The notes: generated by a model not told the origin, from the sequence alone. A stretch of 64,000 nt of DNA from Trichoplax adhaerens (GCF_000150275.1 NW_002060945.1:7183607-7247606); one strand, 5' to 3'; positions 9,101 through 44,185 are shown, counted from the stretch's first letter. Translations and numbers: made by a program.

Positions 9101-11522
9101 AAGATTTGGGAACATTAAACTCAATGAAGTTAATTGTTTTCCGGCTACTAAATTAAATACTAGAGATCCGGTAATCTCGCGTAATTCAGGATAAGTGGTT
9201 ACATTGACCTCAGCTGGCGTGTTCATTCGATACATAATAATGAAAACTGATCCAATGTAAACTGTGCAACCTTTTAAAACATGGGCATCTCTGACAAATT
9301 TAAGCTGTAGACCATCGCCGGTAGGATCGTGGCAGGCTGTTTGAGAGAAAATAGCGTCAATACCATAAAGTCGCAGATTATATCTCTAATACAGTAGTGG
9401 TTTTGTTATAATTTGCAAGAGCTGTTACGTTATGCAATAGGATATCATACTTTAAAGTGTGTAGACAAATAAATAAATAAAATTTCATTAGGAATTGTAG
9501 ACAACTAAATTCGTAATTGAAATAATACAAGGATGTACTATGCACTTATAAGCACGATAAAATAGGCATAAGGAAATAGGAATTTAATTTATACGATAGG
9601 GAAATAGAATCAGTCGATTGAATACTTAAGCGATAGGGTTCGGTAACTGCAAGGTAATTGAATCAAGAAGCCGAAAATGATGCTTTGAGCATACATTACA
9701 AAATATTGTTAATCTGTCATGTATATAACATATATATATGTCAGATACAGAATAATGTAGTAACTAACACCGTTTATTTTATGCTTACATGACAAAGTGA
9801 GATTATTCTTTCATTCAATAGACTACTACTTTACTGTTGGTCTATATCTAGAGAACATGTAGGGTGCATAGGAAAAAAATTAATACACAATAATCCTTGA
9901 CTATTCAGCAGGCCTAAGAAAAATATATTATCGGATAAATTAATTGGTGGTCAAATTTTTGGCCTACTTTTTATTGTCAATAACTATAACTGATTTCTAA
10001 TACTCGCCTTAGCAACTAGTTAATTTTTTCTTCGACCTATAATTGACCTTTTCAAGCTTATGATTGGTTAAAATACAGTAATGGCGCAATATTTTTATTA
10101 CAAACTATACTGTAATTACACCGTACAGTCTGCTTGACGAGGATGATTTTATAGAAAAGAATTACTATACAATGAATACCTTACTATACAGTATGCTCGG
10201 TGTACACTGTACACTACAATACAGATAGTTTTAATAAACGTTTATGTATATTAATAATTTGGAATTAAGTGCTATAAATACTTGCTTTAAAAAATTATAA
10301 TGATATATGCTGGAATTGAAAGAATAATTGTAAGAATTGTTTATGAGCCTCATTATTAACTTAGTCATTTTCTAAGAAATAAAATGTGAATAATTTTTAA
10401 AATATAATTGTTTTCATTTATGGAAGTAGTGCATTCCTGCCTGAAAATTTAAATATATATGAGAATAAATATATCTATAATTACGATAATTGATTTTAGC
10501 GGCTTTCAGTACTGAATAATTATTTTTCAAAGTGAAAGAAACTGAAATTAATTTTAATTTCCCTTGCTCTGCTATTCAGCATAATAGCTCAAATCACGAA
10601 TTTTACTCTACTTGAACAGCTATAAGGTTTTACTGGTAATGCTATAATTCCTTCTAAGCATATTCTGATAGTTATTTTTATGTTAAAAATGTTGATCCAG
10701 TTGGAGAGCTAAAAAAGTCTAAAAATGCAGGTATAAAGTATCAATTTTAGTACCAAGTGTTACTACATTAATGTGGAACGTTCTTTCCTCAAGCAATCGA
10801 TTAAAGGGCTGGAAAAAGGGATATGATGCATTTATATAACATACAGAGCAGCTAGAGAACATTGCAGAATGGAGTAGAACTTATCGGCTTAATATCACAG
10901 TAATAAAGTTTAACAAACTTTTCACATTAATTGTATGATGACTTTGGTAGACGGACTAAATAGAAATGCTTGTACTTTGTGTGCTAAATTGTAAGGTACA
11001 TATATACGAAATGTTTCTTTCGTTGTATCACACAATGAACGTAATATTATATCTATCAATCGTAATATTTTAATCACAAAATAGAATGAGTGGTAGTTAT
11101 ATTTACTGTACTATACTTTATGGGTTTGGATAAAATCTTGATGATCTAATAGGAAGAAATTACGTTTTAAGACTAAGCTTATTACGTCATTGTATGTATA
11201 TTAGCTTTAAAATGTTTCATTTTAAAATGAGTACTTTAACTGATCTGATTGCTTAGTGGATAGGATAAAGGCAAAAAATAGAAAAAAAATGAATATAGCA
11301 GGTAAGAAAAATTGTTAAAAAATTTTACGAAAGCTACTATTAGTCTATATTGGTCATGTAGATGGTTGCGATAATTTAAATTGCAAACATCAAGCGTATT
11401 AAGAGTAATGGTATCTTGATTATGTCGTTACCTTTTGTAGGTATTAGACAATCGACCGCTTGTAGATTAATATAGGCGATGGTAATGAGAGAAATTAATT
11501 TCGCGACTACTGGATACTTCAT
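139..11522 (-). CDS. INSR: Insulin/IGF receptor-family tyrosine kinase, paralog 1 (InR-1), about 26 exons; +1 frameshift in the DFG exon as assembled
   Basis: Spliced by hand with GT-AG and consistent phases. Signal-peptide exon 11432-11522 ([25 protein letters not shown]). L1 exon 8815-9336 ([13 protein letters not shown]). Cys-rich exons 8377-8540 and 8032-8173 or 7195-7330. L2 exons (HFNPRLC), FnIII exons ([18 protein letters not shown]), TM exon about 3125-3215, juxtamembrane NPNY. Kinase motifs [47 protein letters not shown]. Last exon ends at stop 139. Confidence 0.93.
7195..7330 (-). CDS. InR-1 cysteine-rich exon 4, version b ([45 protein letters not shown])
   Basis: Intact 136-nt exon with AG/GT ends, phase 0 to 1. 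Same length as the InR-2 equivalent exon 22630-22765. Confidence 0.85.
7490..7539. other. Assembly gap (50 N)
   Basis: Run of N. Confidence 0.99.
8032..8173 (-). CDS. InR-1 cysteine-rich exon 4, version a ([47 protein letters not shown])
   Basis: Intact 142-nt exon with AG/GT ends, phase 0 to 1; 2 codons longer than version b. Confidence 0.85.
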
Positions 11523-15881: not shown

Positions 15882-18800
15882 CTATAACTTGCTCACACGA
15901 ACATTTCTTGTACTACCAAATGTATGAGGTTTTTCACGCTCTCTTAGCGTATTATTCGTAACCACAACACACGGGGTAGATTTGCTAACTTCACGATTTT
16001 TGCCAAATTCTTGCCGCTGCAGTATAGTAGAATCACGGGATGCGGTAATAGTTTGAATAATAGAACCACTGCCATGCTGACTGTTTAAGACTTTCTTATT
16101 AAGTATTAAATTTTTACTGGAAATTTGATCGTTGCTGCTTTCACTGGTACTTTTTCTCGAGATACTACTGCTGCTACGGGTGGTACCTGATAAACTGTCA
16201 TATCTTTCGTTATTAATCGAGTTCGCACTGTTAGCAGTGTCTCTAATTTCCAATCCTAGTGCAGCTGCTCGTTCTTTCTCCGCATTTCTTGTCTCATCTT
16301 TCATTGCAGCTTCAGCGCACTCCTCTGAGTGATAATAGGATATTTCTTGAAAGGATTCTGGCAAGTCGGGAAGTAACAAGGCGATAATTTCTCGAAATCT
16401 TGGTCTTAACTTTGGCTGAAACTGCGTACACGCAACCATGAGGCGGTACCTAAGATAGTTAAAATATAATATTATGGACATTTGCTAAGATAAGAAAGGC
16501 AACGAGGATAGACATTAAAAATATATATAAAGCATTAAAATATAGATCATTTACAATTTGTCAGAGCAATAAGGTGGTCTTTCTAAGCCTCCACCATCTA
16601 AAACGTATTTTAAAACATCCTCATTCGACTTTCCGGGATACGGTTGTTCGGAAAGAGTAGCAATTTCCCAAAGTACTACGCCATAGGACCTTTAAAATTT
16701 TAATAGTAAAAGGCTAAATTAAAATTACGCCCGTATATTAGACCAAATATTTAATGTCTAACCACAGTTTGTAACAAAGAATATTTTGATGCATCTTACC
16801 ATACATCTGTTGCTGATGTAAAAACACCGTCTCGTAAGGATTCTGGTGGCATCCAACGAACAGGCAACATTCCTATATTCAAGTTATAATTCGCATTAAT
16901 ACTTTTAAATGTTATATAACTGATTCTATTGACGGTTTGTAAGGATACAATCGTAATAAAATAAGGACTCGTATTTTCATACCCTTTCCACCTTTACGGT
17001 AATAGTCACTGGCGTAAACGTCGCGTGTCATGCCAAAATCTGAGAGGCACGAAATGTTGAAATTTAAAATTAAGAAATTTTTTTACGTTATTAATAAACT
17101 CTTTAAGTATTTTAATTCAAACAATTAAGCAGTGTTCTTACCTCCGATCTTTACGATAAAATCTCCGGAAACCATGCAATTACGCGCCGCTAAGTCTCTA
17201 ATTAATACATAAGTAGTAAACTGGATATAAATTGCATAAATGACGATAACTACATAATATTTACTATTAATATTTCAAAACTGATGCTAAAACGTAGCGA
17301 CTTATAGTTGATTTCGTTTTAAAATAATAACAGAATATCAAGCCCTTACAAAGAATTCGTTCCTAGAAATAGATTAATTTTATACAAATTTGAAAACTAC
17401 GCGCAACCAACCTGTGTACAAATTTTTTATCACTTAGATACAACATTCCATCGGCTATTTCGGCCGCCATTTTATGAAATTGTACATCGGAAGGTCGGTT
17501 AGGATTGGGTTTCAAGTACTATACATTTTCAAAGGTCGTATAAATTGGAATAATTTTAACTCAAAATTCTTTATAAAATCTCATTAGATAATTTAATATA
17601 TGATTATACGTATACATGTATATTGCTGCCTACATAATCTGGGCTATCAGCATCTTCTCGAAGCGATCTTAAATGATTTTTTAAATCGCCGTTAGCCATT
17701 AACTCCATAATAACTAAAGGTGGAAGTCCTTGCGAAACGATTCCAAGCAATCGGACCACATGATTACAATCAAATTGCCTACGATTATCCCAACATAGGA
17801 CCAAAATTTAGTAAGTAGAGGAGCAATAATGTAATTATAGCATTTATGCATAGTATTTACGGATATGTGTGTATTCGTATTATATTATATCGCACTAATT
17901 AATAATTTGCAAATGTAATAGAAGGTGTGAAATATTACTTCATAATACAAGCTTCATTTAGAAACTCCTGGCGCTCTCGGAAACTAGCTTTCTCGTTCAC
18001 CGTCTACGATAAAAATGAAATAATCAATTACTATGATAATCATTTCTGACTGGTAAAATGGACTTTGTATGGTTAATATGGTTATCGATTGGTATACTTA
18101 ACTGACCTTTACAGCTACTTTTGTTTTTAGTTCTCCATAAATAATATCAGCAGCTTCACCAAGATATACCATACCGAACGCACCTTTACCTAATTCCTTC
18201 AATAGCGCTATTTTTTCACGTTCAAACTCCCAATCATCAGGAATATAAACTATAATAGTTACAATAGATAAGCATTAGTGATATGAAATAAATAGTAATC
18301 ATTCCGATAGGTTCATATGAAATTATCTCTTGTTACTTTTTATTAACTTAATGAATGAAAATATATATACAGTACGTATAGAAAACAATCTTACCATCTG
18401 CAGCATTCATATAATCGGGGTTGATTGATTCTATAAATTCTTTGTGCTTTTGCTTAAATCTGAGTAAATATTGCCAAGTTAATGAAGAGTTTTAGTATAG
18501 TTCATAAGGCAATAGTCTAATTTACCGTCTTCTTAGGTAGTACCATATCCCTCCACCGGCAGTTAGGATAACAAAAACTGCAGCACTAACAATAGAGGCT
18601 ACGGTAATGACCTGAGCTCGAGCTTCGAGTAATAAAGGAAGAGATTTAATTTTCCAATAAAGACATATGAAATATATAGTAATGCAGTAGGGTACCGTTA
18701 CATCATAAACTCATCATATACCTTACAGAAACTGCTTAGAATTTAGTCATTACTAAAATTTATTGTTTAGAGTAGAAAGTAATCAGTTGCGACATCACAT

Positions 18801-21800
18801 TTTACCTTCTATATTTATAAACTCCACTGAAATATTACCAGCCCAGGAACTGTTTCCAGCCAAAGATGTTGCTTTTACGTCAAAAATGTAAAAACCATAT
18901 CTACCTAACCCAATTTCATGACCGATTCCTTCACTATAATTTGCGGCATCTACACATCTGGATTCCATCTAAAGAGAGAATTATACGACGGTTTGTATAC
19001 ATGATCGCAAGTTTGTGATATTACAAAAATCAATATACTGTATACTGTACTACTAATTAAGCAAATCAAATATATAGTAAACAAGATAAATGCTGATACC
19101 TTATCGTATTTCAAGCCCCCGAGATACCGAACTTCATCCTCATAGCGAGTAATTCTAATCTCATACGCTAATATATGCCCACCATTTGGATTCACAGGTG
19201 TACTCCAATTCATTACTACGTCATAGCTGTTGGGAACTTTTACCACACTTACATTTTCAATTTGATCTCTTTTCACTAGAATCGTATGTAATCAATTTCA
19301 TCAATGAAATATATGCTATACCCTACATGACAAACTACAGACTGAATATATACTTACCATCAGGTAAGGTCCTGATATTATATAAATCGTAAGCGGAATC
19401 ATCACGAATAGAAGGACATTTGCTATTGCATGGAATTATCTATACGTAGAAAAGGTATATGGTTCCAATTATCATCTCATAATACACTGTATTTCTGTCG
19501 TCAACTAAGTCGAAGTTGATATCGGACATTACACACGAAATTTTACATAAAGAGTTAAAATTTCAACTTACCGTTACACTATATTTAGTAAAAGACTTTA
19601 AATTGTCCAACGTAATGTATGTATCACGAATTTGTTTAACTATAATAGGAGCAGGAGTCGCCTTAGGTGTTGATGTCGTTTGAACGGTAGACCTACTCAT
19701 AGAAACGGTAGTAAGTTCTGTTGTTGCTATGGTAGTTGGCATTGTAGTAGCTTTCGTGGTAGGTCTTGCAGTTGTCGCTATTCAAGAAAGAATTTTTTAA
19801 CAGAAAATATACCCATTAAAATGTACTTGGGGATATATTAAATCATGGCCAAAATGCAGAAAATAGGTAACAATAATACAATCATATCGAACATGATTAG
19901 CATACCAGTTGTTGGAGTCGGGGTTGTTACATTCGCAGTCGATACCGTAGTAGGTGCTGCCGTTTTTTTATAGAAAAAGAGTTGAGTAAGATATTCATAA
20001 AAATTTTGATTTTCACTTTGGATATCTTTAGCTTCAGATTGACTTAATGTTGGTACAGCAGTAGCTAAACACGGACAACTATCGTTTACAGCCACTGGAG
20101 GTGTAGGTGTTGCATCAACGATAGGTTTAATTACAAGGTTCGGGATGACAGTACCGCTAGCAGTGCAAACTTCTGTTGGCAAAATTTCTCTCTCTATACG
20201 CTGCTGGTACAATATTTTGTAAGTTAAGTTGAGACCATTAGGAGAAGACGGAGGATCCCAAGAGATTCGAAAGGATGACGGCGAAAGGTTGATGTATTCT
20301 ATATTTCTTATTTCCGTGGGTTCTGTAGGCAAATGATAATTTAAATATCTTAGGGAAAATATATACCATAACGGATAGATTGTTAATGTACTTAGAACTT
20401 GCCATAGTTATAAGTAGAATAATTTTAGATCAACAGTTAGATAGCATGTTAGAATTGGGCAATTCCATAATTTACTAACAAATACATAGTTTACACGTAC
20501 TAGCAATTAGCAATTCCTTTTACATGACAAAAAACAAAGAGCTCATAGAGTGTGTAATCTTGGTTACACGCTATACACGTATAAAGTGGCAAGCGAACTA
20601 CCATAATTAGAATCTTCCTTTGCAGCAAGTAAAGTGCATATATTACTACAACATCGTGTAGTGAGATTAATTTCAAGACTGGCGTAAGAAACCATTTGGT
20701 ACGCTAAATGGGTATATTATTAGTACAGTATACCATACTTACGCACGTCAGGCGATACGTAATATTTAATATCACTTATAGCTCCAACGCGGCTGATGGT
20801 TAAGGTTTTAACGTATACAGCGTATATCGTATTCGGCTTTAAATTTTTGATCTCAGTTTTGTTTTCTTCAGCGTCGACAATGATCTCTTGCCATCTATAA
20901 ATTGCATAATATAATGGAATAATAAAAACAAAGTACGACAATAAGAACACCAGCCAGTCATAAAACTGTTGATTATAATAATATTCTTATATTCAAGGTA
21001 AATTTGTCCGACATGTAAAAATTTAATAATTCGAGAGTAGTTACTATAATCTTAGCATACACTTTAACTCCGCACGCGTCAACACCATCATAAACGGTCA
21101 CGTTGAGGTTAGTCCTGAATGAGAGTAATTTGAAATCCTGCGTGAGTACATCGACACTAAAATAGCAAGTACTCCAATTAAAGGGTTTTCAAATTTGTAC
21201 ATTATTACTTACGTAGGCCGATAGTATACGATGTAGTTTACTAGCTTATTAGATCCTCCAAGTAGAAGGGTATCGATCAGCACCCACTCCACTTTTAAAC
21301 TAATTTTGCGGTAGCTATATCGTACCACAGGTTGAAATGTTGTAATATTAATCGGAAGAATGGTGCCTAATGCAACAACCATTAAAGAAAATTGTAAGAT
21401 TTTAAGCATACTCAGTAGGCAGTTATAGAATTTTGATCAATTAACACGGTATTAATGACCAAATAACATAAAAAAATGCTATGATTTATGCGGTGTTTGA
21501 CTTCCTTTACAAAAGTAGAAATGTTGATATCTGAAACCGTTACGAAAGACTGAGATACCCACATTGAATTTGATCTCCATTGGTTTGTTCTGGGATATCT
21601 AATGGCGACGTATTATTTTCTTGCCCGATTTCTTTGGCTAGTCTAACAATAAGGTTATGGCATAAGCGTGGGTTGAAATGGAAGAATAACTTCCCTCTCT
21701 TGACTTTTAGTTTATCTTCCGTTTTCGGTTGCCATAAATTTTCTAAATTCCGGTTGTCAAGCATAACAATAGCGTAGCTATGGAATATAAAGGTTATCAT

Positions 21801-24589
21801 ATAAATCGTTATCCATTTCTCGATTATTATTTTTCTACTGTTGTATTTAGTTTACGATACAGTATTGGGCAAGTAACCCTAAACATATAATTTTCACCGG
21901 TGAAACGAATTCAATACGATATCACTATGGCGGCGAAGTGAGTGTAATTTGTAAATGCATTTGCAGTCGAGCGAATTTTAGTTTACTTTCTTATCACTTA
22001 TCATTCACACTGGATGTAGCTTAATTACTGTTACATATATGCTATAGTAATGAAATAAGAAAACAATGTTTGGCGTACCCATTTCCTTCCTTATCGGTTC
22101 TGGCTAGTTGATTACCATGAATAATTTTTAGATTCTTTAAGAACTCTAAACTGACGATAGAAGGTGTGCTAGATATCTCCAAGTAACCTTCGATCTCTTC
22201 CACGTTGCTAAGAGCATCTTCCAATTCTTTCACAATATTTCCAGCTATCAATATGACAGTGTATCAATACAATATGGTTAAGAAACGGATTACAAACTGT
22301 TCAACCTTAATGTATCATGCGCACATATCATAAATTGTTATAGCAAGCACATATTTAAGCTTACAGCCATAAGTTATCCGAATGATCAGGTTGCCCTTTA
22401 ATACCGTACAGCGTTTCAGATTTTGTAACCGATGATCGATTGACGATATAACAATGTTTTGGCCTTCATTATTCTTCATATCACATTCTAGTTATAATAA
22501 TATTTCCTGGTTAATAGGAGAAGCCTTACGACACTTTTTGCTTAATATTAAATCTCGCTATAGCATGCTAATAATTTTAAAATTGTTTTTACTTTAAATC
22601 GGGCTATGATTAATATAAACATACTGTACCTCTTTTACATCCATCACAAACAATGCACTCTTTGGTCGCTTCAAACTCTATCCATCCTTTAGGACAACTT
22701 CTTATACAGCTAAGTTTATGACGATATGATCCTGCTGGACAATGCCTCACACAGTGTCCTTCCACCTATACAATAATATGATTTGGAGAATAGCACAAAT
22801 TTAAGGTTTTGGTACTCAATTTTTGTGTTTAGGTATGATTTATTATAACTAACTAGAACTTCAGTCGACTAAAAGAGGTTTACATAAATAATGCATAGTT
22901 TATAAATTACTATGATATAGAATAAGTTGCATCTGTATGCTTGGTATTGATACTGAATGTAATCAAGAATAAAAGTTATCACAGATGATATTAGTTCATA
23001 GAAACCGTAATTATTTTTCTCATTATTTAAAATTATTTTCTATCGCAATCGTTACCTCATAAGTGCCAAAAGGACATCCTGTCATGCAAGTACCATTATA
23101 ATTTTGGTGTTTACATACGTAGCAATTACTGGCTTGCGGACCAAAACATCCACCCAAACACTCAGCATGACAGCACTTGCCATTGCTATCGCAACCAGAT
23201 TCACCGCAACTATCGCAAACTATCGAATAAACCAACATTAGGATCAGTAAATTATGAATAAGTAGCAATTACAATGTATCAGATTAGCTAATACCTTCTA
23301 AGGAGATGCTAGGGTACAAGTACACTACGCTGTTATTTAATTGAGAATTTACTGTGTGTCTGTCAAGACTACACGAAAGGTCGAAAGCAATATTGAATTT
23401 ATTTATTGTTATACAGATCAAGATACTCTAAAATAAAAAACTGGCTGTAGTGAGTATAATATAAAGTAAAAAAGTACATAGACAGTACACAAAGTATCAT
23501 GAGCAAGGGAGGGGCTCTACAGTAGTAAATGTAATTTATTAATCAATCAACATACTGATTTGGCATTTCTGTGCATTCCAACAATAACCATTGCATTTAG
23601 CTGGACAAGTTGGGCAATTAGTCGGTAAAGTTTTTGTGATGACTCTATCAGGTGCATAACTTGATCCCATAACACTTGACCATTTAATAGTATTATAGTA
23701 GCACATATTCTGATTGTACTGGATTCTGACTTTACCGCGTTCGATTTTGGTGAGTGAAGGTAATGACATGTCTAGCAATTGCCGATCATAATAAAGAAGC
23801 AAAGTAAAGCCATAAAAGAATTGATTGCCACGGATTACTCGTAAATTTGGAAACATAAAACCAAGGGAGGTTGGATATTTGCCAGCTACTAAACCCATTA
23901 CTAGAGATCCAGTAATTTCCCGTAAATCAGGGAATATTGAAGAATTGATTTGTGCTTGTGTATTCATTCGATAGTTGGCAAAAAAAATTGATCCAACGTA
24001 GACCGTACAACCTCTTAAGATAGGAGCATCAACGATTTGTTTAATAATTAGTCCCTCGCCGGAAGGTTCATAACATACTACAAGAGAATAATAATAAATA
24101 AACTGAGTAAAGCCAGATCACTCCGTACTAAAGTGTAAAGTGAAGACAGAAGACCATTATCAATCAAGTTCTAAAGTGTTTATGAAACGATTAACTATTA
24201 CATGCCACCTACCGGTATATCATTACACACAAAAACAATAATAGAAAATATCTACAAATCAATCAATGCCGCAATATGCATAAAGTCTGATAAAGGTCCT
24301 TGGAATACTGTAGTTGAAATCAGTTTAATTCTGAATAAGTTCATAAAATATTTCACATAGACATTTATTGTTAATCTAAGTCACCACGGTGCACTGTGTT
24401 ATGTACAGGATAGATGAATGAACATAGATGGTATTACGCGTATTATGGTATCACGTGCGGAAAGTTGATTTCCTGTATCTTCGTCTTACCTTTGCTAGGT
24501 AGCTGACAATCAACCAAACCAATAGAACATATCAACCCAAGCGAAAGAAGCATCATGATATCTACGGTGATAAACTTCATTCTGGCCAT
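15882..24589 (-). CDS. INSR: Insulin/IGF receptor-family tyrosine kinase, paralog 2 (InR-2), about 26 exons, apparently intact
   Basis: Signal exon 24490-24589 ([28 protein letters not shown]). L1 exon 23556-24077. CR exons 23056-23219 and 22630-22765. L2, FnIII, TM (about 18526-18624), NPDY. Kinase motifs [39 protein letters not shown] (exon 16983-17039), RWMPPE. Stop at 15882. Intron positions match InR-1. Confidence 0.95.
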
Positions 24590-27192
24590 GATGAAGCTAT
24601 TCTTCAAGAGGCAAACCAATTACCGTTTACCCACTTCGAGAGCTTTTTAGGGATACTGTCATTCACTAATTGGGTAATTACCACATGTAGTGTTGATAGG
24701 AAAAGCAAAAAGTCCTTCGAAGCTAAAACTAGTCAGAAAATCACGTCAATCGATTAGTCACATACGTTACGAGTGTTAATAAAAAGCACAAATAGGTACA
24801 GTTTAGCAGGTTATTTTTGTCCATTTTGTCCTTTTATTGCTCTTGGCTTTTTCTATTTAATTAATTCAATTAAATAAATGAAGAATTGACGTAATGGACA
24901 TATCGTCCATCGCAGTGGTGTAAATGGTGTGCTAGCAAAAGTAAATATGAAGAGTGTCAATTTCTGACTTTTGGTTATAGTAAAAATGGCTTTGTAAAAT
25001 TGGAAATGATACAGTCCACTATCATTTTAAGCGGAGTTGAGTGTTACTGATCTCCAAAATAGTGATCAATCCTGTACATTAATACAGACGAATGACCAAA
25101 GCAGGGTGCGTTTAGGTATTTTCGAAGCTATTTACAGTTGGTGTTGACGCGTTTCCATACAGTACAATGTACTGTATTGGACAATACTACAGTACTGTGC
25201 TTTACAATATTCGGAGTCACTAAGTACTGTACTGTACTGTCGAGTTTGAATCGGGTTGTTTCAAACAGTTACCACAGCAGTCCATCAGCGCTGTGCCAAG
25301 CCGTGCATCTCAACCTTTACAGAGCAGTACTGTACTGTAGGTTTCCAGTCAGTGATAGGCAAGCCTCTAGTTTGTAGATTACAGTATACCAGTTCGAGAG
25401 AGATGACAACTAATTTTGGAAATGCTGTTTTTACTGAGCGTAACTGCAGTTTAGAGAGTTCTAAAACGTTCTTAAAAGACTGTTTTTACACTGATTGTAT
25501 AAAATCTAAGCAAGTAATAAATGTACGTGCACCGCACTACACTACACTACTACATCGCAATTTATCTCAATTGACGAAATGTCGAAGAATGATCGATCGT
25601 TTGCCGTAATCGTGGTATTAATCAGTAGAGTTAATAAGGACACTGTTATGTTCATATAGTTCTATTCATATACAGCAATAAACCGTAAAAATACGTTTTT
25701 AGAGAATGCAGACTAGGCTAGCAATCGAATCTAACTGTTTATTACAGAGGTGCTTGCGCGAATGTTAACGCATACGTAAATGTGAAAAGTATGATCCTAA
25801 GTTAGTAATACATTAAGTAGTGTGCTGTATTGCTATATACTTTGTACTATAATCCTAAACAGGTCTTGATCTTTTCTAAATTGGCCAAAGTAAAACGAAG
25901 TATCATAAAGAGTTCATATCAAGACTGATCGTCTGTCCTGACGAGCAGTTACGCGGAATATTTATATTTCTTGCTATCTGTTATTAAACATGGCAGTAGA
26001 TTAACCGATTAAATGCTTTTGCTAATAATTAATTATACATCATTATGATTATACATGTCGTAACGTGCGTACAAGGTACTAAATGTAAAACCCAGACGAT
26101 CAGTATCAACGGTTTTTGTTAATAAACCTTTTGACGTTTTCACTGAAAAAATATCCAGTATAGCGGTGTAATGTGCTTAATCATCATCAATTACTGTTGT
26201 CGACGAGTCATTCTAGTGCAATACGTAGAGATATAGAATATAATACTATATAATAAGATGAAATTTGATATGTACAATGCACTGTACTGTACTTCTACTC
26301 GTGCAGTACTGTATGTTTCGCGTTTATGACCTTACATGTAGCAAGCGCGCCTGGAAAAGTTGTAATTATTGGAAATATTTAGGACCGAATATGTACATTA
26401 TTTACTTCTATTGGTACACATATTACAGTATACAGTATTGTGAAGGAGTACACAACTAAAATTCTTCATTTTTAGTTGTCGTGAGTCGTGTCCAGCGGGG
26501 ACCGGAGACGCGTATTACATATACAGCAGATGCGTACAGTATAGCAATAATTAACAAATACTGTAAACTATGCCGTACTGAGTGTTGTGGTCTACACCCA
26601 AGACTTTTCAAGTATTGTATCAGGGATTGTATCGTATCGTCCAGTATTCGCATACCGGAGACTTCTATTGTACTACAAATTTCTACCACGTATGGAACTC
26701 GTAGCTACCTTAGACTGGCACTCATAGCAACAAAAAAGTCGAATGTAGGATCAATTTAGTCTTTCTAAAATTGATACAGTCTATTCGGAAAGAGTGACAT
26801 AAGCGCCAAGATCCTGTAAGAAAATGATTGACGTAAAAGTAGTCCAACATTTAGAGTATACAGTACTGTACAGTACTATCGAAGTTTGTCTCAATATCAT
26901 CCTTATTTTCATTGCTGTACTGTACGTAGTGTAGTTTGAAGAAGAAATCTGTGCTTACTGAGTACAGTTATTACGGAATTGGGATCAACATTGCAATATT
27001 TCATAGCTTCACTGGTGAAAAGCGTCCTATCTGAGGATCTATTTTATCCATGAATGCACTACTTTATTTATTAATAGTTACAGTATGATCGACTAAAGTT
27101 ATTAGTCCGTCTATAGAACTTACGTTCATGGGATTCCCTTATTTTTTTGCTTTAAGAATTTGATTTCGTTCTTGAGCAATCAACACATCAAC

Positions 27193-27445
27193 NNNNNNNN
27201 NNNNNNNNNNNNNNNNNNNNNNNNNNNNNNNNNNNNNNNNNNNNNNNNNNNNNNNNNNNNNNNNNNNNNNNNNNNNNNNNNNNNNNNNNNNNNNNNNNNN
27301 NNNNNNNNNNNNNNNNNNNNNNNNNNNNNNNNNNNNNNNNNNNNNNNNNNNNNNNNNNNNNNNNNNNNNNNNNNNNNNNNNNNNNNNNNNNNNNNNNNNN
27401 NNNNNNNNNNNNNNNNNNNNNNNNNNNNNNNNNNNNNNNNNNNNN
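27193..27445. other. Assembly gap (253 N)
   Basis: Run of N. Confidence 0.99.
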
Positions 27446-27588
27446 ACAGATCAAGATACTCTAAAATAAAAAACTGGCTGTAGTGAGTATAATATAAAGT
27501 AAAAAAGTACATAGACAGTACACAAAGTATCATGAGCAAGGGAGGGGCTCTACAGTAGTAAATGTAATTTATTAATCAATCAACATAC

Positions 27589-28625
27589 TGATTTGGCATT
27601 TCTGTGCATTCCAACAATAACCATTGCATTTAGCTGGACAAGTTGGGCAATTAGTCGGTAAAGTTTTTGTGATGATTCTATCAGGTGCATAACTTGATCC
27701 CATAACACTTGACCATTTAATAGTATTATAGTAGCACATAATCTTATTGTTCTGGATTCTGACTTTACCGCGTTCGATTTTGGTGAGTGAAGGTAATGAC
27801 ATGTCTAGTAATTGCTGATCAAAATAAAGAAGCAAGGTAAAGCCATAAAAGAATTGATTGCCACGGATTACACGTAAATTTGGAAACATAAAACCAAGGG
27901 AGGTTGGATATTTGCCAGCCACTAAACCCATTACTAGAGATCCAGTAATCTCCCGTAAATCAGGGAATATTGAAGCATTGACATGTGCTTGTGTATGCAT
28001 TCGATAGTTGGCAAAAAAAATTGATCCAACGTAGACCGTACAACCTTTTAAGATAGGAGCATCAGCGATTACTTTCATAATTAGTCCCTCGCCGGAAGGT
28101 TCATAGCATACTACAAGAGAATAATAATAAATAAACTGAGTAAAGCCAGATCACTCCGTACTAAAGTGTAAAGTGAAGACAGAGGACCATTATCACTCAA
28201 GTTTTAAAATGTTTATGAAACGATCAACTATTACATGCCACCTACCGGTATATCATTACACACAAAAACAATAATAGGAAATATCTACAAATCAATCAAT
28301 GCCGCAATATGCATAAAGTCTGATAAAGGTTCTTGGAATACTGTAGTTGAAATCAGTTTAATTCTGAATAAGTTCATAAAATATTTCACATAGACATAAT
28401 TTACTGTTAATCTAAGTCACCACGGTGCACTGTGTTATGTACAGGATAGATGAATGAACATAGATGGTATTACGCGTATTATGGTATCACGTGCGGAAAG
28501 TTGATTTCCTGTATCTTCGTCTTACCTTTGCTAGGTAGCTGACAATCAACCAAACCAATAGAACATATTAACCCAAGCGAAAGAAGCATCATGATATCTA
28601 CGGTGATAAACTTCATTCTGGCCAT
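27589..28625 (-). CDS. Second version (probable allele) of InR-2 exons 1-2: signal peptide plus L1 domain
   Basis: Exons 28526-28625 and 27589-28110, both intact. Differs from 23556-24077 at 14 amino acids. Confidence 0.8.
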
Positions 28626-31264
28626 GATGAAGCTATTCTTTAAGAGGCAAACCAATTATCGTTGACCCACTTCGAGAGCTTTTTAGGGATACTGTCATTC
28701 ACTAATTGGGTAATTACCACATGTAGTGTTGATAGGAAAAGTAAAAAGTCCTTCGAAGCTAAAACTAGTCAGAAAATCACGTCAATCTATTAGTCACATA
28801 CGTTACGAGGGTTAATAAAAAGCACAAATAGATACAGTTTAGCAGGTTATTTTTGTCCATTTTGTCCTTTTATTGCTCTTGGCTTTTTCTATTTAATTAA
28901 TTCAATTAAATAAATGAAGAATTCACGTAATGGACATATCGTCCATCGCAGTGGTGTAAATGGTGTGCTAGCAAAAGTAAATATGAAGAGTGTCAATTTC
29001 TGACTTTTGGTTATAGTAAAAATGGCTTTGTAAAATTGGAAATGATACAGTCCACTATCATTTTAAGCGTAGTTGAGTGTTACTGATCTCCAAAATAGTG
29101 ATCAATCCTGTACATTAATACAGACGAAATGACCAAAGCAGGGAGCGTTTAGGTATTTTCGAAGCTATTTACAGTTGGTGTTGACGCGTTTCCATACAGT
29201 ACAATGTACTGTATCGGACAATACTACAGTACAGTGTACTGTACTGTGCTTTACAATATTCGGAGTCACTAAGTACTGTAGAGTTTGAAACGGGTTGTTT
29301 CAAACAGTTACCGCAGCAGTCTGTGCCAAGGCGTGCATCTCAACCTCTACAGAGCAGTACTGTAGGTTTCCAGTCAGTGATAGGCAAGCCTCTAGTTTGT
29401 AGATTACAGTACAGTATACCAGTTCGAGAGAGATGACAACTAATTTTGAAAAATGCTGTTTTTACTGAGCGTAACTGCAGTTTAGAGAGTTCTGAAACGT
29501 TCTAAAAAGATTGTTTTTACACTGATTGTATAAAATCTAAGCAAGTAATAAATGTACGTGCACCGTACTACACTACACTACTACATCGCAATTTATCTCA
29601 ATTGACGAAATGTCGAAGAATGATCGATCGTTTGCCGTAATCGTGGTATTAATCAGTAGAGTTAATAAGGACACTGTTATGTTCATATAGTTCTATTCAT
29701 ATACAGCAATAAACCGTAAAAATACGTTTTTAGAGAATGCAGACTAGGCTAGCAATCGAATCTAACTGTTTATTACAGAGGTGCTTGCGCGAATGTTAAC
29801 GCATACGTAAATGTGAAAAGTATGATCCTAAGTTAGTAATACATTAAGTAGTGTGCTGTATTGCTATATACTTTGTACTATAATCCTAAACAGGTCTTGA
29901 TCTTTTCTAAATTGGCCAAAGTAAAACGAAGTATCATAAAGAGTTCATATCAAGACTGATCGTCTGTCCTGACGAGCAGTTACGCGGAATATTTATATTT
30001 CTTGCTATCTGTTATTAAACATGGCAGTAGATTAACCGATTAAATGCTTTTGCTAATAATTAATTATACATCATTATGATTATACACGTCGTAACGTGCG
30101 TACAAGGTACTAAATGTAAAACCCAGACGATCAGTATCAACGGTTTTTGTTAATAAACCTTTTGACGTTTTCACTAAAAAAATATCCAGTATAGCGGTGT
30201 AATGTGCTTAATCATCATCAATTGCTGTTGTCGACGAGTCATTCTAGTGCAATACGTAGAGATATAGAATATAATACTATATAATAAGATGAAATTTGAT
30301 ATGTACAATGTACTGTACCGTACTTCTACTCGTGCAGTACTGTATGTTTCGCGTTTATGACCTTACATGTAGCAAGCGCGCCTGGAAAAGTTGTAATTAT
30401 TGGAAATATTTAGGACCGAATATGTACATTATTTACTTCTATTGGTACACATATTACAGTACACAGTATTGTGAAGGAGTACACAACTAAGATTCTTCAT
30501 TTTTAGCCGTCGTGAGTCGTGTCCAGCGGGGACCGGAGACGAGTATTACATTTATAGCAGATACGTACAGTATAGCAATAATTAACAAATACTGTAAACT
30601 ATGCCGTACTGAGTGTTGTGGTCTACACCCAAGACTTTTCAAGTATTGTATCAGGGATTGTATCGTATCGTCCAGTATTCGCATACCGGAGACTTCTATT
30701 GTACTACAAATTTCTACCACGTATGGAACTCGTAGCTACCTTAGACTGGCACTCATAGCAACAAAAAAGTCGAATGTAGGATCAATTTAGTCTTTCTAAA
30801 ATTGATACAGTCTATTCGGAAAGAGTGACATAAGCGCCAAGATCCTGTAAGAAAATGATTGACGTAAAAGTAGTCCAACATTTAGAGTATACAGTACTGT
30901 ACAGTACTATCGAAGTTTGTCTCAATATCATCCTTATTTTCATTGCTGTACTGTACGTAGTGTAGTTTGAAGAAGAAATCTGTGCTTACTGAGTACAGTT
31001 ATTACGGAATTGGGATCAACATTGCAATATTTCATAGCTTCACTGGTGAAAAGCGTTCTATCTGAGGATCTATTTTATCCATGAATGCACTACTTTATTC
31101 ATTAATAGTTACAGTATGATCGACTAAAGTTATTAGTCCGTCTATAGAACTTACGTTCATGGGATTCCCTTATTTTTTTGCTTTAAGAATTTGATTTCGT
31201 TCTTGAGCAATCAACACATCAGCGACTACGGAGCTTTCAACTTTTTAGTCTTCACTCTTCAACA

Positions 31265-36810: not shown

Positions 36811-39800
36811 ATGCCTACGAAACTTTCCAATCTTAAAAATACGGACGATAAATCGAAAGCGTCCAAGTTTCGCGTTAGGGTCGTCAATTCCAATCCAGAA
36901 GCCAATGATAATTTACCGGTTACCAACCAAAATATTGATGTCTGTCAGGTCAAAATGGATTATGCGCCTGATACACGTCAGGAGGAAGCATGTACATCCG
37001 ATCTTCATTCCTGTATAAAATATCGTCAAGTAGATGAAGAAAAGGGTATGATGGAGAGTTACCAATCGAAACGAGGATTGAATACCGTTAGCCATAACAG
37101 TGGGCCACCTTGTCATTCATCGAAATTAGATTGTCGTAAATCCCGAAACGATAATTTGGAGGTCGCCTTCGATCTTTCATCTTGTGGTCATGGTAGTAAA
37201 ACCTCGAATAGCAAAAATGATTATAGGACAAATTATAGTGAATCCGCTCATCACATTGATACCTATAGTCCTTATTATACCACGGAAGCTTTGCCCATGT
37301 TAACATTTTACAAGCAAGCTACTACTCCCAATTCCAACTATGGAAGCCGACCAACGTTAGACGACCTTCATTGTCCAGATGTCAGTATGACTAGAATAAA
37401 TTCTTTTTTATAGCTATTATTTCATACACTTATTGTCATGTTAAAGAAAGTATAGTAGTATAATGTCGTCCATGCCGCTTGATATTCTTCGTACTTTCTA
37501 GTTATTGCTACTTCAATACCGATAGGAAAAAAACTTTGCAATCAATATTTATTCCTTATTTCCTTGCCTACAGTATACGATAGCGTTAGGAATAATGTCT
37601 TGTAATCATGATACCACATATTATAAATTGGTTAGAGCAAGTAATGGAGAATGGAACCAATTTTTCTTGAGTTAGAAACAAAGTTACTCGTATACAGTAA
37701 CGGTGATCTGCTCTGTCAATAAATTGCTGTTGAGGATAAGATTGCAATCGTAACAAGTAATCTCTGATTTAGAAAACTCCCGCGCGAGAAACTGAAACAG
37801 TGGCAACTCAAAAGTTGAAAACCAATGGAGTTGATGATGCATCAAAATTCGGTTGGATTAAGGGCGTCCTGGTATGATATTTTTTTTTAACTTAAATCTG
37901 ACTTTTATACATTGTCGCATCTGTTTCTGTGCGAATGTGATCCTTAAGTAAAGTAGTAATGTAAACTTCTTAAAGTGGACTTAAGACGGAAATGAAAAAG
38001 ATTTAGTACGACATTCAACTAGAAATAAGTCGTCACTTCTTGTATATACTCGTGCATATTGTAATATGGGCTACTAAGGATTCCTGTGGCTCTTGACTAG
38101 ACCCTAGTGGTCTCGGCTTTCCACATATTTGTATCAGTTACTTGTCAAAGCTTTAATTTTCCTAGCAATTCTTTATGCTTATACTTACCCACAGGCGACT
38201 TTGTGCATTTTGTGCACAAGGCGATCGCCTCTTTTTACACTCTTAAGTTAAAGGCAAAGTGATTGATTTAATTTATCATATTCTATGTTGTATGAAAAAC
38301 CTTCATAAAGAATGAATATGTTCTTTATTTCTTTGATTAATGATATCATTTATTCCTCAGTAGGTTGACTGAAACTATTGATAAACAATTACGATATAAT
38401 AACTTTATCGCCGCTGTTTACTCTGTTAATGCAGATTCGATGCTTGTTAAATATTTGGGGAGTTATGTTGTTTTCACGTCTATCCTGGGTAGTTGGCCAA
38501 GCCGGTCTAGGTAGGAGAACAAAATGGCAGTCAACTTTGTTATGATTAATTCAATTGAGCATGTTAATATAGCATTGTATTATGTTAACGTATTATGTGC
38601 AAGAGAATACCGTTGCCTTTCATGATATCAATAATGACAATTATTGCCATTTTATAATTCTTCAACGATTTTTTAACTCGTATTATATATTAGAGTTATT
38701 GTTTACATCAATTATGACGTCGATACAATAGCTTGTAAGTGATTTTGAAATCTGACAACAGTTTAATCTAGTATCAGCTTGCTTGCGATATGAAATTTGA
38801 ATTTTTTTATAGTTGGTTTGATATTGGTATTACTCATCTAGAGATATTCTTAATTCTTTGAATTTTTTATTTCTATATACAGTGCATGTAGAGGAATTCA
38901 TTTGAGAACATACAGTATATTCACTTACTGTTACGTGGAATTTATAATAGAATAATTTTTATTATATTGCTGTCCCATTCTCTACTGTACTGTAGGTCGT
39001 TATACGCTAGTGTGTAGAAATGGGGTTATACTAGGGGATTGATTCACGTATGATTACTATATATTTGGCTAATATGATTTAAGACCCCTATAATTGATAT
39101 ATTATTTTTAAAATTTTAAAGTTTTAGAGTTGATCACAGACTAATAAATAACAACATAGGCGTGTAACGTAACTGATACTGATTCATTGCCTTCGTGTTT
39201 TGGGGTTCATATGATAGGCTTCGCTTTGCTGATTATTCTTCTAGCGGCAGTAATAACTGTTGTAACTACTTTGTCTATGTCTGCTATTTGTAGTAATGGA
39301 GAAGTAAAAGGGGGTACGTAGTTATATAATTGGTATTTCTATAAATCTAAATTTATTAGAAGATATATTACTGTGATACTAGCTATTCAGTTATAAAACT
39401 TTATGTTCGTTTCTTTTGAAGGTGGTGCATACTACCTGATTTCTAGAAGTTTAGGACCTGAATTTGGTACTTTTTACGCAATTCGATTAAAATCGAACGA
39501 TATGTTAGCTAAATTATGCGCATGGATTAGTTATTTTACGTCCTTGTTCTGCGATATAGGTGGCGCTATAGGATTAATATTCTCCACCGCTAACGCTATT
39601 GGTGTAGCATTGTACATTGTTGGTTTTGCTGAAGCTGTGAGAGATTATCTAAAGGTAATTTGATGGAATCATCAATTAAAATTAAATTAGACTGAAGATT
39701 ATCTTATTAAAATTTCAAAAAATTTTTTTAAATACTTTATTATTCTTCCATGCATCCTAGGTTATAAACGTTGTCATAGTCGATGATCTTAATGATATTC

Positions 39801-42800
39801 GCATTATTGGCGTGATAGCAGCTACACTCATATTTGTTATCGTAATGATCGGCGTAGCATGGGAAGCCAGGGTAAGTTCGCGATATAATCATTGACGAAT
39901 TAGACATTAAAGTAAATTATAACGGTAGGAACTTTTAGTCCAATATATCAAAAGAAAATAATTAATATATAATTATGCATTATTACCTTATCATATAAGG
40001 CCCAGCTCATCTTATTTGTTTTACTGGTTGGAGCGATTATAAACTGTATAGTTGGTCCGATTATTTATTCTTTTACAATGCCCGAAGAAAAGCGTCTTCG
40101 CGGATTTACTGGACTAAACGGTAAGATGCCCATGCAATTATATTATGAATAACGATAGCAATGTTTCTTTACAGTAATGATCATATATTTTAGGGACTAC
40201 TTTCTTAGCCAATATGCCTTCGAAATTTTCACCCGGCGAATCATTCTTTACAATTTTTGCTGTTTTCTTTCCTGCTGCAACTGGTATCCTCGCAGGTGCT
40301 AATGTTTCAGCAATTTTAAAGGTAAAAACTACATACAGATAGAATATCTAACGGTGAAAATTAGAGTTGCTATTTACTTCAGAAGTAGTAAATGCGTAAT
40401 TTTACAGAATCCCTCAAAATCAATACCGAAAGGAACGTTATCAGCCATTTTGATCAGTACCATCACATATTTGGGTTTGGCTTGTCTATTTGCATCATCG
40501 GTCGTCCGATCAACCGCTTATGCTTCTGATGGTATTAACGTTGTAAACTGCACATTTCCGAATAGTTACGGACTTCTATGTGATTATCAGGTAATTAATT
40601 ATTTTTTTTTGCAGTGACGTGAAGGATACTTTCTAGTTTAGCAAGATTTCATTTCGTTACCTATTATGAAAAATTGAATTGATGTACTGTATTAAATCAC
40701 AGGTTGCAAGTATGATTTCTGCTTGGGAACCTTTAACTGCTGCTGGTAACTGTATATTCAATATTTTAAATGTGCTACAAATTAACCCTTGTAACACTAT
40801 ACGTATGACTAATCGAGTTGAGTAGTATTTCATTATCACTATTGTTAATAATCCATTAACATTTAACGTTACTATTATTCAAGGTATTTTTGCAGCTACA
40901 ATTTCTTCGGCTTTAGCAAGCTTGGTAGGAGCTCCAAATGTTTTACAGGTACACACGTGCTTTATTTAAATCGAATACGATCGATCTAATCATTTTAGTC
41001 TCATGATAAGGCTGTTGGGAAAGACAAACTATTTCCATACGTTAAAATATTTGGCGTTGGCTATGGAAAAATGCAAGAACCTCGTAGAGGATATGCACTT
41101 ACGTATGCTATATCGATGGCATTCATTGCCATAGGTATGGTACATGATACAACTACGTTATATTTACCTTATCTAATATAGATTTATGCTTGGAAAATAA
41201 TATATAAGCATACCGTTAGCTCTAATTTTCAATTTTTTGTTAGGAGACCTCAATGACATAGCTCCGATCATTTCAAATTTTTTTTTAATCGCTTATGCAT
41301 TAATCAACTATTCATGCTTTGACGCATCGCAAGCATGTTCACCAGGTACAGCAAATGTAGTCGGAAAAATTTTTATGAACCGTCTTTTACTTTCTTACAT
41401 TTTCTCTTTTTAACATGATAGTAATACTGTAATTTAATTAGTAAGTTGGATGATATTCATTGAAAGAAATTATTTAAATAATACTTTGATAGGATGGCGG
41501 CCATCATTCAAATATTATTCCAAATGGTGTTCACTTCTTGGCGCTGTGCTCTGCATTGGTGCGATGTTTGTAATTAATTGGTGGGCTGCCTTGATAACCA
41601 TTGGTTTCGTTGCTAGTTTATATAAATACGTTGATTATACAAAACCAGGTACATCTTGAAGCATTGATTTGATAGATACCTTTTTCAATATCTAAAATAG
41701 CTATTAATAACGAGAAACGATTTTACTGAAATATTTAGAGGTCAATTGGGGTTCGTCTGTGCAAGCCCGTCAATACGTCAGCGCATTAAATGCCGCATAT
41801 AGACTTAATGCGACTCTTGACCATGTCAAAAATTTTCGGTAGATATCAACTGTTTTCGTTGTTCAACATTTTGCCATGCTGTTGTAACTGAAGATAGCTG
41901 GTATTATTATTATCGATGTCTAGCCCACAGTGTCTTGTACTTTGCGGAAATATATCTGAAAGAAGAAATCTCGTTCAGTTTGCCTCGCACTTTACAACCA
42001 ACACTGGATTATTAATTTGTGGTATTATTCAGCCGGTATGAGTCAATATAATTCTTAAAATGTTTTTCTAGATAGCTTGAATCATTCTAAAACTATTGAA
42101 GAATATAAAGTGATAAATGATGATAATCAATTAGGAAAAGGCTCGAGAACGCTTGCAGGAGCAGTATGAAATCTTGCAGCAGATGAAAGTAAAGCTGAAC
42201 TCATTTCTCAATTATTTTATTATTTTAAATGAAAATTGTTATCAATCGTAACTGTAAATTAGTAGCACTAAATGAATGTACTATTTCATTGTAGATCAGA
42301 GCTTTTATTTCATCGGTGACCAGCAATGATTTACTTTCTGGTGCGAGATCGTTAATGCAAGCATGTGGTTTAGGCAAATTGTCTCCAAATATGATTCTGT
42401 TCGGATATATGGAAAATTGGAAAAATCGTCTTACTTTGGTGGACGATTATGTAAATATAATCCAGTAAGAAAAAATGTCATGTTTTCTGCTCATTTCTGT
42501 ACTACTTAGTTCATTACACTCGGAATAAAATTAAGAGAAATTTTAAACAATTTCTAGCGATGCGTTTGATTTAAATTTTGGGGTAGCGATATTTCGAAAT
42601 AAGAATAATATTTCCATGGTACCTAATAAAGGTATGTTGTACATTGTACAACTAAAATGGCATATACTAGTATTATTTTAATTATTTTTGTCTACACCTA
42701 TAATGTGATTTCTCTAAATCATGTTGAGACGTTTTAAATAAAATTTATATAAAATTTATTATGAAGCTGAAAACTCCACCCGAAATACTAACGAAAGTAA

Positions 42801-44185
42801 AAATGGTTTGGATGAAATCTTAACAGAAATGGTAAAACTTTCTCCAGATGATAACTTTACTCAATTAAAAGATAAACCCAAAAGAAAAAACGTAATTGAT
42901 ATCTGGTGGATTTATGACGACGGGGGTAAATAAATTATGGCTTACTACTTGTAATTCCGTTTGCAATTGTTAATATTCATTTTAGACATCGAGAATGCTG
43001 TAGTATTCCCATATTAGTTACATTGTAAAAGTTTTAATTTTGGTTTTGTTATAGGTTTGACTGTTTTGATCCCTTACTTACTAAGCCTAAGCAGATATTG
43101 GTCAAATTGCAAATTGAGAGTATTAACCCCTGGAAAGCCAGAGAGACTGCAGCTAACGATGATTAGGTAGTTATAGTAGTTAGACATTCGTAATTCTTGA
43201 ATTGAATCAAAGTAGTAGGAAATGTAATGAAATTTCGAACTCTGGCAAGTTCAACTTGTTGTGTGTACATTATTGCACGGATTAAAATGAAGTCCTAGGG
43301 AAGTTTTTGTAGAAGTTCCAATATCGATGTTACTGAATGATACCGTGTCCCAAAACGTCTAATCGCATACCATGCTATCTAGATGCTAGATAATGTTTGT
43401 GTAAAATTTTTGTGGAATAGACATGTATAAACAAATAGTAACTTGGAATGAGCTAATCGAGTAATGACTGACCATTAAATTATACGAATTTCGGTTGTTA
43501 TGTATACTACGAGTATTTTTATCTCCCTATGTTAAAAATAAGTTTCTTATTAACTTCAACCGTTGTGTCTGCCTCCCAATAGGATGGCAACTCTTTTGAA
43601 AAAGTTTCGCATAGATTATGAAAATGTAATTGCCTTGGGTGATATAAATGAAGAACCTTGTGAGGAGAGGTACAGTATTGAAATTGTGATAGTCAATAAT
43701 AATACGGACATACGTCGTATAATTGCTAAAGTTAATAACGTTTATATAATTTTAGCATATCCCTTTTTCGGGAACTCTCTGCTGACTGCGAATATTGTGA
43801 TAATAACTTGGAGCTGGATGATAAAGTAAGTTAAGATCGTTCATACTGAACTATTTCTATTGCATCGAACTAACTGCAAACTATTAATACCGTTAAACAG
43901 TCTAAAAGACACATCAAAATTGGCGAATTGTTATTGAAGCATTCTGCCGGATCAAATTTGGTAGTTATGTATGTATTATTTTATTATATTATCATTGAGC
44001 CTGATGTAAGACTTTTTAAACGAAATATGTTTTAATCGTTCTTTAGCACCTTACCTATACCTCGTAAGAATGTCTGTACCGCAACTAAATATATGAGTTG
44101 GTTGGAGGTTATATCTGGTTCACTAACTTGTCCGGTATTAATGATACGTGGAAACCAAACTAATGTTTTAACGTTTAATTCTTAA
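36811..44185 (+). CDS. SLC12A2: SLC12 cation-chloride cotransporter, NKCC/NCC clade, paralog A (multi-exon)
   Basis: Spliced motifs [109 protein letters not shown] and C-terminal [13 protein letters not shown] (TAA 44183-44185). The symbol denotes the family; exact orthology is not established. Confidence 0.93.

Follow-up and report, generated by a model that had tools for sequence, protein, structure and literature searches.

Falsely duplicated segments are known from heterozygous assemblies of the Sanger era, in which both haplotypes of a region were left uncollapsed. In the reference genome of Trichoplax adhaerens, 703 scaffolds reach 2 kb or more, another 662 are smaller and 50 belong to the endosymbiont; its GC content is 32.7%, and N make up 10.8 Mb (PMC6057997). 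The animal propagates clonally, is highly heterozygous and shows a raised short-term dN/dS, and a hybrid origin has been proposed (PMC6057997, Kamm et al. 2018). Its alleles of SMAD6 and NK6 carry several replacements in conserved domains; the insulin receptor is not mentioned in that study (PMC6057997). The presumed species possesses four insulin-like peptides and three receptors (PMC12702675). In the human insulin receptor (INSR) and in IGF1R, the primary ligand-binding site is formed by the beta-2 sheet of the L1 domain together with the alpha-CT helix, and the residues N15, E97 and K121 affect insulin binding (PMC2577065, PMC8513149).

The locus described here lies in a stretch of 64,000 nucleotides from T. 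adhaerens with a GC content of 33%, referred to as the window. Like the false duplications mentioned above, it presents copies of 97% identity that end at a scaffold gap, along with small scaffolds that carry a second haplotype. It differs from the typical case in that the overlap includes the ligand-binding exon of a receptor, exposing both alleles. As in SMAD6 and NK6, several replacements fall into a conserved domain, and with 14 replacements in 173 residues they are denser than in these published examples. The gene, InR-2, shares fold family and gene architecture with human INSR and IGF1R; however, the identity between both L1 domains is low, the first 17 residues being left unaligned by HMMER, and ligand binding by InR-2 is putative.

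InR-2 and its two L1 exons

The gene, InR-2, is an insulin-receptor-like tyrosine kinase and the middle one of three tandem genes. The features referred to below are the following (positions in the window unless a contig is named):

8816-9334, minus strand: L1 exon of InR-1, 71% (nucleotides) and 65% (amino acids) identical to copies A and B, used as outgroup
16554-23268, minus strand: remainder of InR-2, stop-free pieces assigned by Pfam exon by exon
23413-27192, no strand: overlap unit A, end of the contig before the gap (self-BLAST, 97.1% over 3800 columns)
23556-24077, minus strand: L1-domain exon of InR-2, copy A (522 nt, phase 1-1; Pfam Recep_L_domain, E=3e-17; INSR L1 residues 23-165)
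24490-24589, minus strand: signal-peptide exon, copy A, coding portion only (start codon ATG at 24589, splice donor at 24489); copy B at 28526-28625
27193-27445, no strand: scaffold gap, 253 N
27446-31225, no strand: overlap unit B, start of the following contig (3.78 kb; its first base aligns to 23413)
27589-28110, minus strand: L1-domain exon, copy B (522 nt, phase 1-1; Pfam Recep_L_domain, E=1.5e-16)
L022:6658-8797 against L022:8848-10000 into L023, about 41 kb upstream of the window: second haplotype overlap

Downstream of L1, InR-2 continues with exons for a furin-like Cys-rich domain, two L2 exons, putative fn3 domains, a Thr-rich stalk, a transmembrane segment and a tyrosine kinase. The gene was searched exon by exon, and the exons were not joined into a spliced protein. 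The ectodomain order L1, Cys-rich, L2 was recovered in this way (Furin-like, E=1e-13; Recep_L_domain on the two L2 exons), and two exons matched fn3 with E=1e-4 and 2e-3, both under the Pfam cut-off for single exons. The kinase was represented by PK_Tyr_Ser-Thr on three exons, and the motif series DFG...YxxxYY...GGKG occurs in a stop-free piece at 16915-17082. We take the YxxxYY activation loop to be a mark of the insulin receptor family, and fn3 domains between L2 and the membrane separate this family from EGFR/ErbB. For the L1 exon alone, ErbB L domains score as well as INSR, and the family assignment therefore rests on the whole gene.

The tandem paralog InR-1 is located in the window at 141-9334 and InR-3 just upstream of the window; both are real neighbours on one contig. 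A word-based protein search returned three proteins that were 80%, 67% and 66% identical, the protein and contig look-ups excluding records of T. adhaerens and near relatives. Two scans of metagenome contigs for closer relatives or other lineages found none. Placozoan-like insulin-receptor genes were present on the contigs L006 and L028 (ENA ERZ23499115) and L027 (Logan SRR30664516), and the nearest relative of InR-2 among the sequences retrieved is an 80% identical ortholog on the ENA metagenome contig L006. In the tree, copies A and B form one clade with this ortholog, while InR-1, InR-3 and two other metagenome copies make up the sister clade. One metagenome carries both an InR-2 ortholog and a copy of the InR-1/3 type, indicating that the split between InR-2 and InR-1/3 is older than the split between the two species. 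InR-1 and InR-3 look like the result of a later duplication.

Some further features of the cluster were noted. InR-1 and InR-3 share a core of 4.3 kb, introns included, at 97.5% identity (window 2391-6713 against 12.6-8.2 kb upstream of the window start, L025-L026), which would reflect either recent gene conversion between the neighbours or assembly cross-talk. Outside the core, their 3' kinase and L1 exons are only 79-87% identical. The stalk exon (fn3/Thr-rich; 4596-5090, minus strand) holds about 30 differences between both genes (13.5 silent, 16.5 replacement), the ten other exon cores together 8. Two versions of an 'InR-1' Cys-rich exon exist, and the one at 6850-7489, before a 50-N gap at 7490, is 100% identical to the start of the small scaffold C820 (L005:1-640), which is scaffolded to an InR-3-type L1 exon. 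This version probably belongs to InR-3, which is gapped at that place, and the contig that carries it looks chimeric, joined via the near-identical core. A second tandem gene pair in the window, at 39160-44180 and 48460-54110 (plus strand), has exons of 75-85% identity and encodes cation-chloride cotransporters of the SLC12 type (Pfam SLC12, E=6e-15; AA_permease, E=4e-10).

Copy A of the InR-2 L1 exon runs on contiguously into the remainder of the gene. Copy B follows 143 nt after the next contig begins, occupying nt 143-665 from there. Both are complete exons, bounded by AG at the acceptor and GTATGT at the donor site, and copy B has kept its reading frame, its cysteines and its splice sites. 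An ungapped alignment of the two shows 21 differences in 522 nt, and neither exon contains indels or stops. These differences amount to 6 silent and 15 replacement changes, the latter in 14 codons since codon 13 has two. In the order A/B, and with the numbering starting at the first Cys of the exon, the changes are I11M, Q13V (two nucleotides), V15A, R21K, N38H, Q42H, I43V, S45A, Y96F, R98Q, Y120N, Q122K, N123I and V145I, thus affecting about 8% of the 173 residues of the exon. The majority are conservative (I/M, V/A, R/K, I/V, S/A, Y/F, V/I), and S45A affects the unconstrained x of an N-x-S/T sequon, the sequon itself being present in all copies compared. Around the exon, the 143 nt of downstream intron (23413-23555) are identical, the signal exon, which is weakly conserved towards the ortholog contig, has a single silent Leu difference (at 24533), and the distal non-coding part (25536-27192) differs at 16 of 1657 nt, or about 1%. 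All of these counts agree with those of an earlier, sequence-only reading of the locus, and so do the four clusters of changes that it had listed, QYNQN/QNNKI among them.

The position of the copies relative to the gap is precise. Unit A is the final 3.78 kb of its contig, the alignment ending at 27190-27192 and thereby no more than 2 nt from the gap, and unit B begins at the first base past it (gap end 27445, unit start 27446). For the 300 nt on each side of the gap, a partner was found at the distance predicted by the overlap. Hence, the gap is bordered on either side by the end of a copy, the contig ends overlapping head to tail, which is the arrangement of an uncollapsed overlap. Overall, the units differ by 1.8% in substitutions, in blocks of 0-4%. 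The same 3.8 kb are thus present twice, once where a contig ends and once where the following one begins, which strongly suggests an unmerged overlap of two diverged haplotypes.

The pattern recurs in the neighbourhood. Among 6 gaps surveyed in 264 kb, two were flanked by clean overlaps, two by partial duplicates and two by neither. The second clean overlap, 41 kb upstream of the window, measures 2.1 kb with 59 substitutions (2.8%) and includes the final exon of a 7TM receptor of the secretin type and an exon of an APH-family phosphotransferase. In addition, the InR-3 L1 exon is present in a second haplotype on C820, a scaffold of 2.7 kb that differs from InR-3 by 1.4% in substitutions, and the divergence between A and B is within the allelic range seen in these two cases. 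Across the whole genome (105,631,681 bases in 1414 contigs), only five L1 copies of the InR type were present. The possibility that the N runs mask real sequence was ruled out, as the runs differ in length from the sequence they stand for, with 254 N in C820 taking the place of about 141 nt of exon; they are assembly gaps.

An identity of 97% is in this cluster not in itself proof of allelism, given that InR-1 and InR-3 share their core at 97.5%. Nevertheless, the two exons are in all likelihood haplotypes, that is, alleles, of one InR-2 L1 exon. The sequence-only reading had called them probable alleles, and the geometry of the gap, the second gap and the haplotype scaffold C820 now argue for this, allelism itself being read from the assembly. 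The assembler would have left the two diverged haplotypes unmerged, so that one contig ends in haplotype 1 of the 3.8-kb stretch and the following contig opens with haplotype 2. Placed next to each other across the 253-N gap by the scaffolder, both contigs would then make the 5' end of the gene appear to be duplicated in tandem, most likely as an assembly artefact.

Position of the changes on the L1 domain

The translations of both exons aligned to residues 23-165 of human INSR L1. Alignment with HMMER against human INSR (2hr7) placed Y96F at E97, R98Q at V99, Y120N at K121, Q122K at N123 and N123I at E124, and furthermore R21K at E24, N38H at T41, Q42H at D45, I43V at F46, S45A at D48 and V145I at V146. 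Residues 1-17 of the exon could not be aligned to human L1 by HMMER, either as a single sequence (phmmer) or as a profile. The first three changes map by hand alone, to I13, N15 and T18 or L17, with K12 as an anchor on R14. Of the equivalences that had been proposed from the sequence, those to E97, V99, K121, N123 and E124 are thus borne out by HMMER, and those to I13 and N15 come from the hand alignment only.

The binding surface of human L1 comprises 24 residues as determined by mutagenesis (PMC2577065), and 17 residues are insulin contacts as defined by structure (PMC8513149). The changed positions include three of the former (N15, E97 and K121; 3/14, hypergeometric p=0.40) and two of the latter (2/14, p=0.50). 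Based on this mapping by sequence alignment, enrichment of the changes at ligand-contact residues was absent, the numbers being at chance level. The earlier statement that many of the changes face the ligand was therefore too strong, most of them adjoining contacts instead. An AlphaFold2 model of L1, built from a 6-row alignment, had a mean pLDDT of 34.6 and was unusable for mapping in three dimensions.

We assume that the changes are located at the strand ends of the binding sheet, on the final residue in rungs 1, 4 and 5, and in the subsequent turns, among them the loop behind rung 2. If these strand boundaries hold, the changes would form a stripe along one edge of the binding face and not in its centre. 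The core of the face is invariant between A and B, for example at K12 (hand-aligned with human R14).

Constraint and selection on the L1 exon

We consider it probable that the two exons are alleles with nearly neutral replacements at weakly constrained positions on the rim of L1. Most of the 14 differences would fall where the strands of the L1 binding sheet end C-terminally or in the turns beyond, at rim positions that appear weakly constrained in every placozoan receptor copy compared. Nearly neutral replacements would have gathered at this rim on two old haplotypes, under weak purifying selection in a mostly clonal lineage. The main alternative, which the sequence-only reading had put forward, is that the alleles have been kept or driven apart by selection, balancing or diversifying, that acts on the rim of the ligand face, resulting in receptors that differ in ligand preference. 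We regard this as rather unlikely; the evidence that bears on both is given in the following.

The divergence of the exon exceeds that of its own flanks. Compared to 21 of 522 nt in the exon, the rest of the overlap differs at 45 of 3234 nt (Fisher's test, p=1.8e-4), and the exon also differs more than an adjacent block of 2.0% (p=0.022). The overlap is a mosaic in which blocks of 0% (23413-23642 and 25536-26055) occur next to blocks of 2-4%, and no 522-nt window outside the exon within it has more than 13 differences, so that the exon is its peak of divergence. Silent divergence is raised as well, with 6 of 114 silent sites in the exon against 29 of 1434 sites in the adjacent intron (p=0.04). 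Purifying selection predicts the opposite, and the higher divergence of the exon compared to the intron, at silent and at replacement sites, therefore counts against a near-neutral origin and speaks for selection.

A different picture emerged from the comparison with other exons. In the other haplotype overlap nearby, 522-nt windows carry 7-25 substitutions with a median of 15, and the divergence of the L1 exon is within this range. The 7tm_2 exon in that overlap has 7 replacement and 4 silent changes and the APH exon 3 of each, and the 15:6 of the L1 exon differed neither from these two (p=0.5) nor from all local controls pooled (p=0.2). In its ratio of replacement to silent changes the L1 exon is thus like the exons of the other overlap, which argues against selection. 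Two comparisons within the cluster count against near-neutrality. The L1 alleles of InR-3 have 0 replacement and 3 silent changes in 108 codons (Fisher's test against the A/B L1, p=0.04), and in the core of InR-1 and InR-3 the exons except the stalk exon hold only 8 differences in 507 codons, compared to 2.5% overall.

Between A and B, dN was 0.038 and dS 0.055 (Nei-Gojobori; 405.3 replacement and 113.7 silent sites). The resulting ratio of 0.69 is in line with the earlier estimate of a value that is high but probably below 1. Over longer periods the exon is far more constrained, with ratios of 0.09 towards the ortholog and of 0.16-0.23 among the paralogs. In a McDonald-Kreitman-type test, the 15:6 between A and B was compared to 39:67 fixed changes to the ortholog (p=0.007; saturation-corrected, p=3e-5), the polymorphism consisting here of the two sequences A and B set against one ortholog, not of a population sample. 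This result indicates that the replacements exceed what long-term constraint would allow; in the ratio of replacement to silent changes, however, the exon matches the control exons. A high short-term ratio is, in addition, general in this organism, as two sequenced lineages gave a genome-wide mean dN/dS of already 0.37 and a mean dS of 0.024 (PMC6057997), and the value for the exon is compatible with this mean. With a ratio of 0.37 and the dS of 0.055 of the exon, 8.2 replacements would be expected where 15 were seen (p=0.02), a value that is unstable as this dS consists of 6 changes.

The 14 codons are hot spots also in other copies. Among the other placozoan copies, they show 2.7 residue states on average compared to 1.6 for the rest of the exon (p=8e-4), and 11 of the 14 vary. 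Between InR-1 and InR-3, dN at these codons was 0.53 against 0.08 elsewhere (p=5e-6), which is 1.07 times the dS of the exon, and between the two metagenome copies it was 0.32 against 0.11 (p=0.009), or 0.64 times dS. A dN/dS above 1 was thus looked for in the exon, where the ratio was 0.69, and at the 14 codons in two independent pairs, and a clear excess was not found in either. The 14 codons behave like unconstrained positions, and their rate is about neutral and not above it. Along the sequence, they cluster more than is predicted by the variability of the sites (p about 0.01). Furthermore, the replacements at codon positions 1 and 2 are rich in transversions (5:8, against 38:13 for silent and non-coding changes; p=0.02, post hoc).

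In summary of these tests, the ratio of 0.69, the similar control exons, the roughly neutral behaviour of the hot-spot codons and the conservative nature of the changes favour a near-neutral origin, while the MK-type result, the clustering of the codons and the richness in transversions count against it. Selection is kept possible by this MK-type excess, the clustering, the raised silent divergence of the exon and the excess of transversions. It would also fit that the homologs of N15, E97 and K121 share the end-of-strand position in rungs 1, 4 and 5 (PMC2577065; PMC8513149), and that the animal has four insulin-like peptides and three receptors (PMC12702675). Against this stand, apart from the ratio below 1 and the missing enrichment at contact residues (p=0.4-0.5), the control exons (p=0.2-0.5), the near-neutral rate of the same codons in independent pairs, and the fact that the case is built on two sequences. 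Balancing or diversifying selection is neither needed by the data nor excluded by them, and as the cause of the differences, which the sequence-only reading had inferred it to be, it is not established. We thus infer near-neutrality, whereas the counts, the gap geometry, the identity of the domain and the codon hot spots were observed directly. An effect of the changes on ligand preference is possible.

Other origins of the two copies, and meaning of the locus

As an alternative to haplotypes, the 5' end of the gene, with promoter, signal exon and L1 exon, may truly be duplicated in tandem, which would provide alternative sets of first exons and two isoforms. The L1 exon is symmetric (phase 1-1) and intact in both copies, and either copy could be spliced in frame. 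Near-identical paralogous DNA does occur in the cluster, as in the core shared by InR-1 and InR-3, and the gap between A and B has 253 N, not 50 N as the other gaps. However, the lengths of N runs are unreliable, as illustrated by the run in C820. More importantly, the inner ends of the copies match the edges of the gap to within 2 nt, and in a true duplication the spacer would have to equal exactly the part that was not sequenced; the same arrangement is found at another gap. The ortholog contig has one signal exon and one L1 exon, which also speaks against a duplication, but it reaches only 2.3 kb upstream and is indecisive in this respect. Taken together, a true duplication appears very unlikely.

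That the extra divergence of the exon stems from gene conversion by a paralogous L1, from paralog reads or from errors near the contig end is extremely improbable: other parts of the cluster do show conversion or assembly cross-talk, and copy B is only 143-665 nt away from the contig start, but at the 21 sites neither copy tracks InR-1 or InR-3 along any tract, the derived state lies on A 7 times and on B 5 times where the paralogs agree, both paralogs have a third residue at 7 of the 14 codons, and the exon is free of indels and stops with the 143 nt nearest to the contig end being identical. Conversion from InR-1 or InR-3 was ruled out on these grounds, no tract being apparent in comparison with paralogs and ortholog and derived states occurring on both copies, and sequencing error is unlikely as the cause of the exon differences.

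With the two copies read as alleles whose replacements are nearly neutral, the locus is an ordinary, highly heterozygous one with a mildly interesting, fast-changing rim of L1, and replacement-rich allelic differences have already been described for T. adhaerens. Functionally distinct receptor alleles, maintained either as old haplotypes fixed in the heterozygous state in a clonal and possibly hybrid lineage or as a balanced polymorphism, with the differences on the rim (at the homologs of N15, E97 and K121 and in the turns next to them) shifting the preference among the four insulin-like peptides, seem distinctly unlikely to us. If they existed, the rim would be a specificity-determining stripe that has diversified among the three tandem paralogs, too.

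Taken at face value, the copies would lead to a mis-annotation of InR-2 with a doubled 5' end, and once the overlap is recognized, gene model and copy number are both corrected. At the same time, the overlap provides a phased view of a ligand-binding domain from an early-branching animal in its two allelic forms. About 8% of the L1 residues can vary from one form to the other, with the core of the binding face remaining invariant. The rim positions that change fast across the placozoan receptor copies are candidate sites of ligand specificity, and as such they may be of relevance to a system in which three receptors are faced with four peptides.
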